From positions 1 to 37,496 of the forward strand of contig CALSCP010000334.1 in the NCBI GenBank assembly GCA_943704425.1: a stretch of DNA of 37,496 bases, in the 5' to 3' direction. Origin of the DNA: Ministeria vibrans ATCC 50519 (Eukaryota > Protista > Filasterea). Below, piece after piece: positions 13,341 to 16,239 of the stretch (the stretch's first letter is position 1; each line of letters begins with the position of its first letter). The translations under genes were made by a program, and so were the position numbers. Below the pieces are notes generated by a model. The model saw nothing but the letters and a program-made list of their open reading frames with translations. It was not told where the DNA came from and searched no databases.

Positions 13341-15237
13341 ATGCGCTCCGCTCTCGTCCACGTACTGGCCTTGCTGTTTGTCAGCTCCACTGCGTACGCT
13401 GTGTGCGACCCGGCTTGCGCCAATGGCGGCACTTGCAACTCGAACGTGTGCATTTGTCCAGATGGTATAATAATAATAATAATAACGTCTGATAATTAAT
13501 TAGTGACTGTATTATTAATAAATGGGTTGTATTCTAATTAATATTAATTTATTCTTCTCTTTTTTAATAGCATACAATGGTCCATCTTGTGCAACAATTG
13601 TTGACCTGTGCGACTCGAGCCCATGCAGCAACGGCGGTTCGTGTGTTCAGAATGGCACTGAAGCAAGCTGCGAGTGTTCCGTGAATTACACGGGCGACGC
13701 ATGCGAGAACGATCCGTGCACATCCACTCCGTGTATGAATGGTGGCAGCTGTACCATTGATGTGTACCAGGAGATGCTGGCCTCAGCTGCAACGTTTGCC
13801 GTGTTTGGAGGTACTGCGGGCGTGACAAGCTCCGGTCTCAACACAGTGATCACAGGCAACTTGGGCTCCACCAGTGCCTCAACCCTCATCACTGGCTTCC
13901 ACGACACGAACACGGACTGCACCTACACCGAGACGACGCTGAACGTTGGTTTTGTCGACGGTCTCATCTACACCGCTGCGCCGCCTCCGACGGCTGCCTG
14001 TCAGATTGAGGGCACTGCACAAACGCATGCCATTGCAACGGCAGCACGTGGCGATATCCAGACCGCCTTCACCACTTTGGCCGGTCTGCCCTTTGACGTG
14101 TCGCAAGCCGAGAACTTGGGTGGTCTAACGTTGACTCCCAAGACGTACTCGGCTGCTGCTTCTTCCTTTATCATTGAAGGAGGAGACCTTACACTTGACG
14201 CACTGGGTGACAGCGAGGCAGTCTTTGTCTTCCAAATGGCTTCGACACTGCGCATTGGTGGTCCAGGCGCGGCTGCTCCACAGAACGTCATCCTGGCTGG
14301 CGGGGCACAGGCAAAGAATGTCTTTTGGCAGATTGGCAGTTCGGGTATCATCAATGCAGCAGGTGGTGGCACTGTGTTCGGCACATTTATTGCCGCGGCT
14401 GGAGTCGCTATCTCAACCGCTGACAATGCCGACGTGGTCATTATCAATGGCCGCGTGCTGTCCACGGATGCATCTGTGACCATGGTGAACACCGTTATCA
14501 ACGTGCCACCTGCAACCCCTGACACATTTGCGTGCTCGTGTACCAGCTCCTTCTCTGGCGACCAGTGTGAGCTCATGTCAAGTTTCACTCGTTGCGCGTA
14601 CGTCAAAAATCAATAATAATAATAATAATAATAATAATAGGAAAATAAATAGAGAATCGAGAGCTGTAATAATATAATAATAATAATAATAATAAATTTT
14701 TATTATTAATAATTATTATTATTATTATCATTATTTTATTTTATTTTATTTTTATTATTACTTTACTATGATACAAAATAAATAGACATGACACTGCACA
14801 TGCGGGTGTGAATGTATGTGTGTCATATTAGTTCAAAAGTAAAAACACTCCTTGACACCTTGGTTCTTCCACACCCCTACAGGTCAGTGTGGTACTGCAC
14901 AGGAGGACCTGTTACCATCGGCGGCGACACGAATGCCGATGCAACCGAGTACCATCGTTCCGAGTGCACTGCGTTGGGCACGGGCTTCAATCACTGTCGT
15001 CTCGAGGTTTTTCGCACGTCCGAATCGACCGACTCGGTTCAGAGCAACTTTCTGCAGGATGTCAACAACGGTGGTATTATGATTGCTAAAGTTGATGCAG
15101 CAAAAGTCGAGGGATGCCTCCCGGCACGCTCCATCACCAACACGGTGTACACTGTGGGCGATGCGGTTCAATCCGAGACGGGTACTGCTGTCGTCACGTG
15201 CACTCTTCTCAGCATCCTCAACGTCGACTTGCTGTAG
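13341..15237 (+). CDS. Secreted EGF-repeat protein containing a DUF3494 ice-binding-like domain
   Basis: Signal peptide MRSALVHVLALLFVSSTAYA; EGF repeats (CANGGTC, CSNGGSC, CMNGGSC). DUF3494 motifs FAVFGG, VITGNLG, NLGGLTLTP, LTLDALGDSEAVFVFQ, VILAGGAQAKNVFWQIGSS, INGRVLS. Exons 13341-13464, 13571-14597 and ~14883-15237; a microexon at 14786-14813 is possible. Confidence 0.88.
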
Positions 15238-15541: not shown

Positions 15542-16239
15542 TCAAGACCAAAAGCCAATGGCAATCCACGCACAGTTGAGAGAAGAATCACTATTACTGA
15601 GCATCGTCATGCCAAGTGCCGTGCGAGAGTCTGTCTGTCCAACAGTTCCAGTTGCGCATTGGTATGCCTTGTCGTTGGTTGCTCGAGCAAGAACAAGTGG
15701 GATTGATGAGAATGGAAAGGCAAACACAATGTCTTCGGGCAAATTGGTGGAGTTAACCACAGTCTCACCCGATAGAATTTGAACATTGCCAACTTGCACA
15801 AGTATCTGGCCGTTTGATGAGTTGGAGGATGTCATTGCTCCTTGGCTGCTCTCGCCTGTGTCCCCCTTTTGTCCCTGTGGCCCAACTTCTCCCTTATCAC
15901 CCTTTTCCCCCTTCACAGTCGAGAAGTTTCCAACAAATGCTCGATAGTCGCCCTCCAATTGAACCAGTTGAGCCATAGACGCAGTGATGTCGGCCCTCAG
16001 CGCGTCCATTCGAGCCAGGATGTCAGAGCCATCGACAAACACGCTGCCGTTCGCCGCAGGAGAAATCACCACGTTGCCATCGACGTTGGAGATGGCCGCC
16101 GCTTCAGAACGCACCCCCACACACATAGCACCCAAGAGCACGGCGATAATCGCAAACCCCTGCGCCGTAATGTGTTTTTTTTTCAAGGTGTTAAAACTAA
16201 CAAAACCCTCATCAATTTTTACTTTACTTTGTTCAACAT
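15542..16239 (-). CDS. Secreted collectin-like protein: N-terminal beta/coiled-coil stalk, short collagen (Gly-X-Y)7, tail-fibre gp53/H-type-lectin-like C-terminal domain
   Basis: MLNK|GFAIIAVLLGAMCVG signal peptide (intron gtaaag...gcgcag); GEKGDKGEVGPQGQKGDTGES; C-terminus IVFAFPFSSIPLVLA...CAWIAIG. Confidence 0.7.

Follow-up and report, generated by a model that had tools for sequence, protein, structure and literature searches.

Gene structure and genomic setting

The window, by which we mean the whole stretch of 37,496 nucleotides that was analysed (Ministeria vibrans ATCC 50519, contig CALSCP010000334.1), is eukaryotic nuclear DNA and belongs to an assembly of 29.7 Mb in 2860 contigs. 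Its plus strand contains a gene of three exons (13341-13464, 13571-14597, and 14883-15237). The product of this gene is composed, in this order, of a signal peptide, two EGF repeats (EGF1 and EGF2), a third EGF repeat (EGF3) that is split by a long insert, and a C-terminal cysteine domain without a family match. For the searches and fold predictions each exon was treated singly, with the exons left unjoined. The features along the gene, together with the data on which their assignment is based, are the following:

13341..13400, plus strand: start codon and signal peptide of 20 residues, from the translation; it ends with A-Y-A, followed by V-C-D-P
13401..13464, plus strand: remainder of exon 1 with Cys1 to Cys5 of EGF1, from the translation and weak matches to the Pfam families hEGF and EGF_2
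13465..13570, plus strand: intron 1, GT..AG, phase 1, 17% GC; matched in position and phase by an intron of the paralog L001
13571..13704, plus strand: start of exon 2 with Cys6 of EGF1, then EGF2 (13609-13704; Pfam EGF, E=2.3e-11)
13714..13761, plus strand: N-terminal half of EGF3 with Cys1, Cys2, Cys3, and the first hairpin strand (T-I-D), from the EGF HMM and an alignment to the N-terminal half of Notch EGFs
13762..14520, plus strand: insert, consisting of short linkers and a complete DUF3494/IBP-1 beta-solenoid, from PF11999; homology core 13777-14508
14521..14571, plus strand: C-terminal half of EGF3 with the second hairpin strand, Cys4, Cys5, and Cys6, from the EGF HMM and a weak EGF_laminin match
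14572..14597, plus strand: tail of exon 2 with an extra cysteine (S-F-T-R-C), conserved in the paralog
14598..14882, plus strand: intron 2, GT..AG, phase 2, 22% GC, rich in AAT repeats; the paralog has an intron in the same phase and at the same position
14883..15237, plus strand: exon 3, C-terminal cysteine domain of about 117 residues beginning with Y-C-T-G, from the translation; stop codon at 15235-15237

The layout of the signal peptide into n-, h-, and c-regions was judged by eye from the translation, and the N-terminus of the paralog is near-identical. Exon 1 ends one base into a codon and exon 2 two bases into a codon, where GTACGT follows. EGF2 matches Notch-type EGF repeats in the PDB and is covered in full length by an EGF HMM built from the same genome (34.3 bits).

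Next to this gene, the minus strand encodes another secreted protein (15542-16186) with a signal peptide and a short collagen-like G-X-Y run (Collagen, E 0.0065). The C-terminal part of this protein shows a weak match to PF21882, the gp53-like domain of phage tail fibres (E 0.0015). This may be a further case of a gene whose head looks foreign. The host genome as a whole is extraordinarily rich in EGF repeats. A single EGF query already resulted in 5928 first-look candidates, many of which are part of open reading frames of 2000-6500 residues.

A complete DUF3494 domain splits the third EGF repeat

An earlier note on this DNA had placed an ice-binding domain between Cys3 and Cys4 of EGF3. The Pfam searches and the EGF HMM agree with this, as the DUF3494 domain is complete and splits the repeat at the tip of the hairpin. 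In the translation of 13714-14571, an EGF N-terminal half with Cys1 to Cys3 (13714-13752) is followed by the long insert and by a C-terminal half with Cys4 to Cys6. The coordinates of the note were accurate to within two residues, but its C-terminal half (14533-14571) starts at Cys4 while the residues F-A quoted as its beginning are found from 14527 on.

The training set of the EGF HMM comprised 186 canonical EGF repeats, all taken from other loci of this genome. The N-terminal half of EGF3 corresponds to positions 1-14 of this model (16.7 bits, E 7.6e-7) and the C-terminal half to positions 17-32 (13.9 bits, E 5.6e-6), which sums up to 30.6 bits compared to the 34.3 bits of the intact EGF2. 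About 254 residues stand in for only two positions of the model (15 and 16) at the hairpin tip. In the paralog, the two halves correspond to positions 1-15 and 16-32. Such complementary half-matches far exceed chance expectation. The six cysteines are canonically spaced, except for the 260 residues between Cys3 and Cys4. All six are kept in both copies, and so are the consensus residues beyond the cysteines (P-C, N/Y-G-G, F-x-C-x-C, and G-D-x-C). In addition, the halves align end to end on the single intact EGF repeat of P0163, a metagenomic protein described below (its residues 341-352 and 351-374).

The insert matches the Pfam family Ice_binding (PF11999) at exon-2 residues 80-310 with 149.4 bits (E=1.4e-43), far above the curated cut-off of 28.7 bits and over positions 3-208 of the 208 positions of the profile. 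The similarity to bacterial relatives extends from L69 to P312, corresponding to 13777-14508, and all of these relatives share two internal cysteines at the same positions. A first AlphaFold2 run with the 341-residue piece and 41 close homologs reached a mean pLDDT of 48 only. With 122 more diverse rows in the alignment the mean pLDDT was 89, with values above 95 in the core of the solenoid. In the model, the insert forms a right-handed beta-helix, and a long alpha-helix (residues 104-126 of the folded piece) runs along it. Foldseek searches with this model matched only solved ice-binding proteins (probability 1.00, target-normalised TM 0.80-0.90), namely FfIBP (4NU2), EfcIBP (6EIO), AnpIBP (7BWY), and 3WP9. 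Based on family and fold, the insert is thus a putative ice binder. The two EGF3 halves are predicted with pLDDT values of 43-57 and without hairpin or strands. Such low values are to be expected because a single homolog covers these columns, leaving just one informative row in the alignment. In published structures of DUF3494 domains, the coils are stacked in the order b1-b6-b5-b4-b3-b2, so that b1 at the N-terminus packs directly against b6 at the C-terminus (PMC7966756). The assumption of the note that the N- and C-termini of the domain are close together holds as far as this published topology goes.

The nested gene has been duplicated and is under purifying selection

A profile search of the contigs revealed exactly two PF11999 loci in the host genome. 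The second copy, L001 on contig C491, encodes the same signal peptide, has the two introns at the same positions and in the same phases, contains a split EGF3, and matches PF11999 with 151 bits. The insertion therefore predates the duplication. Exon 2 of the two copies is 87% identical at the protein level (13% divergence) at a dS of 0.46. The dN/dS ratio between the copies is 0.14 overall, 0.10 for the insert, and 0.29 for the EGF parts. Purifying selection thus acts on the nested protein. By a rough estimate, the chance of keeping all six EGF3 cysteines under neutral drift is about 1e-3. A misassembly, which the note had considered as a refutation of the nested architecture, does not account for a diverged paralog on another contig with the same junctions.

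The insert is of bacterial affinity but looks like a host gene

The insert is 60-65% identical to proteins of proteobacteria including Rhodanobacter, Rhodoferax, Hydrogenophaga, and others. Most of the closest relatives are proteins with a Big_5 domain (PF13205) and a DUF3494 domain, such as P0003, P0008, and P0019, which end a few residues past the motif V-I-N-V-P. These proteins have the same internal cysteines and the same domain end as the insert, whose end coincides with their V-I-N-V-P-A-P. Unlike the nested protein, they have a serial layout with lipoprotein or secretion leaders and contain neither EGF repeats nor introns, and several have a higher GC3. In the phylogenetic tree, the two host copies are sisters with a support of 1.0 and are located inside the bacterial set, while the placement of the pair next to a particular donor lineage is unsupported (0.016). 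On this tree, both copies trace back to one acquisition.

The GC3 of the insert is 0.60, compared to 0.53-0.64 in neighbouring host genes and 0.62-0.94 in the sampled bacterial relatives. The GC content of the insert is 57% and that of the flanking introns 17-22%. We also considered that the insert might be an intron that had been missed in the gene model. This was rejected, since the insert differs strongly in GC content from the real introns and an AG acceptor is missing near the 3' junction.

The C-terminal domain and a relative without insert

The domain encoded by exon 3 ends about 11 residues after its last cysteine. It has neither a Pfam match nor a match in the ESM Atlas, and even a BLASTP comparison between the C-terminal domains of the two copies found nothing. 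However, the number and spacing of the cysteines agree between the two, as read from the translations, and the kinship of the domains rests on this spacing, on shared motifs, and on the comparison of profiles. The paralog has an extra intron within its C-terminal domain, which is therefore distributed over exons 3 and 4. With exon 2 still 87% identical, the divergence of these domains suggests either that rates differ strongly between the parts of one gene or that the C-terminal domain is under diversifying selection. The domain, for which we use its initial motif Y-C-T-G as a name, comprises about 110 residues and is hitherto undescribed. We assign the following members to this family:

Window 14883-15237, plus strand: C-terminal domain of the nested protein
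L001 2372-2467 and 2770-3006: exons 3 and 4 of the paralog
L004 1486-1830, minus strand: small stand-alone secreted protein, weak relative
L005 1501-1851: small stand-alone secreted protein, weak relative
L006 1357-1692: small stand-alone secreted protein, weak relative
L009 1495-1827: C-terminus of an EGF-array gene on contig C2145

Uninserted relatives, as they had been envisaged in the earlier note, are represented by L009. In this gene, a phase-2 intron comes after an intact EGF repeat and interrupts the same codon as in the nested gene, five codons before the Y-C-T-G cysteine. A comparison of its terminal domain with the profile of the C-terminal family by hhalign gave a probability of 93.6% (E 2.2e-7). 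Therefore, a module consisting of an EGF repeat, an intron, and the Y-C-T-G domain exists without the insert. Upstream in the same gene (86-1434), pairs of EGF repeats alternate with a domain bearing an I-N-E-I-H-Y-S-type motif, which is reminiscent of lamin-tail (LTD) domains.

The last EGF repeat of L009 was also considered as the progenitor of EGF3 and was rejected. Its contig C2145 is absent among the 54 matches listed for the C-terminal half. Because many EGF repeats of the genome match this half equally well, no direct progenitor stands out. The host precursor most likely was a small secreted EGF-repeat protein with the lineage-specific C-terminal cysteine domain.

How the nested protein might work

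We regard it as probable that the gene encodes a secreted protein under selection, in which the hairpin between Cys3 and Cys4 of the last EGF repeat harbours a horizontally acquired DUF3494 domain of proteobacterial type, and this judgement includes the working model given here. The model starts from what is observed at the two loci: the nested architecture, the solenoid fold of the insert and its bacterial affinity, the way the domain is integrated into the host genome, as well as the duplication and the purifying selection. In EGF repeats, disulfides connect Cys1 with Cys3, Cys2 with Cys4, and Cys5 with Cys6. EGF3 would refold around the insert, with the disulfides 1-3 and 5-6 formed within each half, whereas the disulfide 2-4 (C54-C321 in exon-2 numbering) would bridge the halves and close the base of the insert. 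Because the base would be closed by this disulfide, the EGF rod and the C-terminal domain would stay in line, and the solenoid would protrude as a sideways knob, like the L4 domain in the LE rod of laminins. The solenoid might then attach extracellularly to ice or to some other regular surface. The reassembly of EGF3 is plausible since coil b1 stacks on b6 and since linkers of several residues flank the insert on each side. The disulfide pairing is that expected from other EGF repeats. The most specific form of this reading, in which a bacterial fragment was captured in frame in the EGF hairpin and the EGF repeat refolds through Cys2-Cys4 and displays an active ice-binding face, is proposed here tentatively, as a possibility that falls somewhat short of being probable.

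The opposite view on EGF3 would be that the insertion destroyed the repeat, and that its halves are only cysteine-containing linkers in a protein in which the EGF1-EGF2 stalk, the solenoid, and the C-terminal domain are arranged in series. The AlphaFold2 model, which lacks the beta-hairpin in the EGF3 halves, would be in accordance with this, and P0163 demonstrates that a serial layout with the ice-binding domain followed by an EGF repeat works in nature. However, given the single informative alignment row the low pLDDT values are expected anyway. In addition, it is hard to imagine why linkers should have kept six cysteines and the EGF consensus residues in both copies after a dS of 0.46, why the dN/dS of the EGF parts should be as low as it is, and why the halves should together score almost like the intact EGF2. 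We therefore consider this alternative unlikely. An artefact, in which the nesting is only mimicked by a chimera in the assembly, by contaminating bacterial DNA, or by an error in the gene model, has even less in its favour. Certainly, the insert closely resembles bacterial proteins and the gene model was read from DNA alone. But two contigs share the junctions despite the divergence of their proteins, a single open frame is continuous across both junctions, the GC3 is host-like, and spliceosomal introns flank exon 2. The insert is also not AT-rich and has no acceptor site at its 3' end, which argues against a skipped intron. Misassembly, contamination, and a pseudogene are excluded because the junctions of the paralog, the selection, and the host-like GC3 all agree, and the chance that an artefact of any kind is behind the nesting is very small.

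The function of the solenoid is a different matter, and here we have to take another use more seriously. The EGF stalk might present an adhesin that attaches to prey bacteria, to the substrate, or to a polysaccharide, and the solenoid would not be an ice binder at all. DUF3494 is the name of a family and not an assayed activity, most of the closest relatives stem from metagenomes and genomes of soil, peat, and freshwater, and the host genome contains just two copies. EGF repeats and a small cysteine domain are also typical partners in adhesion and matrix proteins. However, all solved structures matched by the model are ice-binding proteins that have been studied experimentally, and taxa from cold habitats are among the named relatives. 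Taking both sides together, a role other than ice binding is quite possible although we would rather doubt it.

Significance

Reports on horizontal gene acquisition in eukaryotes usually concern genes that stand alone. In the present case, an extracellular module of the host carries a foreign domain in its middle, and this arrangement has been retained through a gene duplication. This shows a route by which a transferred fragment can join a host protein without disturbing the ends of that protein. If the reading of capture and refolding is true, the gene would be a case of natural loop grafting by horizontal transfer in a unicellular relative of animals. A DUF3494 solenoid that is closed at both ends would also be a naturally constrained presentation of this domain, to which free domains could be compared. 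With regard to protein engineering, the nested protein suggests that a guest of about 250 residues may be accommodated in the Cys3-Cys4 hairpin of a six-cysteine EGF repeat, just as the hairpin of laminin LE domains takes up a guest. If the host is a temperate marine filasterean, the question arises what DUF3494 domains do away from ice.

Comparison with known DUF3494 proteins and nested EGF-like modules

Eukaryotic DUF3494 ice-binding proteins have been acquired from bacteria in diatoms, green algae, fungi, and copepods. To our knowledge, they are either stand-alone proteins or tandem repeats of the domain. They share the Pfam family, the fold, the bacterial affinity, and a host signal peptide with the protein described here. 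Unlike in these proteins, the domain is embedded within a host domain in the nested protein and is followed by yet another host domain.

A DUF3494 domain is also combined with an EGF repeat and a signal peptide in the metagenomic protein P0163 (ENA ERZ28653421), the nearest case in our searches. Its order is serial, however, with the signal peptide followed by the ice-binding domain, a Ser-rich linker, an intact EGF repeat, and a transmembrane helix. The ice-binding domain of P0163 is 52% identical to the insert, and in the tree it ranks 70 of 121 by distance from the window pair. Thus, P0163 looks like an independent association of DUF3494 and EGF. It is encoded on a gene-dense contig of 24.6 kb, on which none of 15 neighbouring genes matches a Pfam family. 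A giant virus or an unsampled compact eukaryote may be the source of this contig; a viral scan with P0163 found nothing.

A word search with exon 2 found no EGF-nested DUF3494 domain outside the host genome. The search with the 3' junction (residues 291-341) resulted in 51 candidates, all of which are ends of bacterial ice-binding proteins. Nested relatives were also found neither in the scan of 1.84 billion representatives, nor in the metagenome scan, which included patterns of the junction peptides, nor in the ESM Atlas. This absence is of limited weight because the same libraries do not contain the protein of the window itself either. In the literature, our search revealed no paper in which EGF modules are combined with DUF3494 or ice-binding proteins. 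The earlier note knew of no description of such a nested architecture, and for DUF3494 in an EGF repeat this agrees with the sequence and literature searches. It is too broad for the nesting as such, since a guest in the same loop is known from the laminins.

In laminins, the L4 domain is inserted between Cys3 and Cys4 of an LE domain, with the array of EGF-like domains extending to either side of it (PMC5338690). An EGF-like domain that hosts a guest in its Cys3-Cys4 loop is therefore a known type of architecture, and the insertion site of L4 in the LE domains of laminin and perlecan is the same as that of the solenoid in EGF3. The hosts differ in that the LE domain has eight cysteines whereas EGF3 is a Notch-type repeat with six cysteines, whose match to EGF_laminin is marginal (E 0.8). 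The guests differ even more, because L4 is a CBM35-like beta-sandwich and the guest of EGF3 is a beta-solenoid of bacterial origin. The Laminin_B (L4) family (PF00052) was not found in the host genome. The split EGF3 thus resembles the nested LE/L4 module in the way it would work, without being a member of that class, and nesting in an EGF-like hairpin has so far been known only for other pairs of domains such as laminin L4 and LE.
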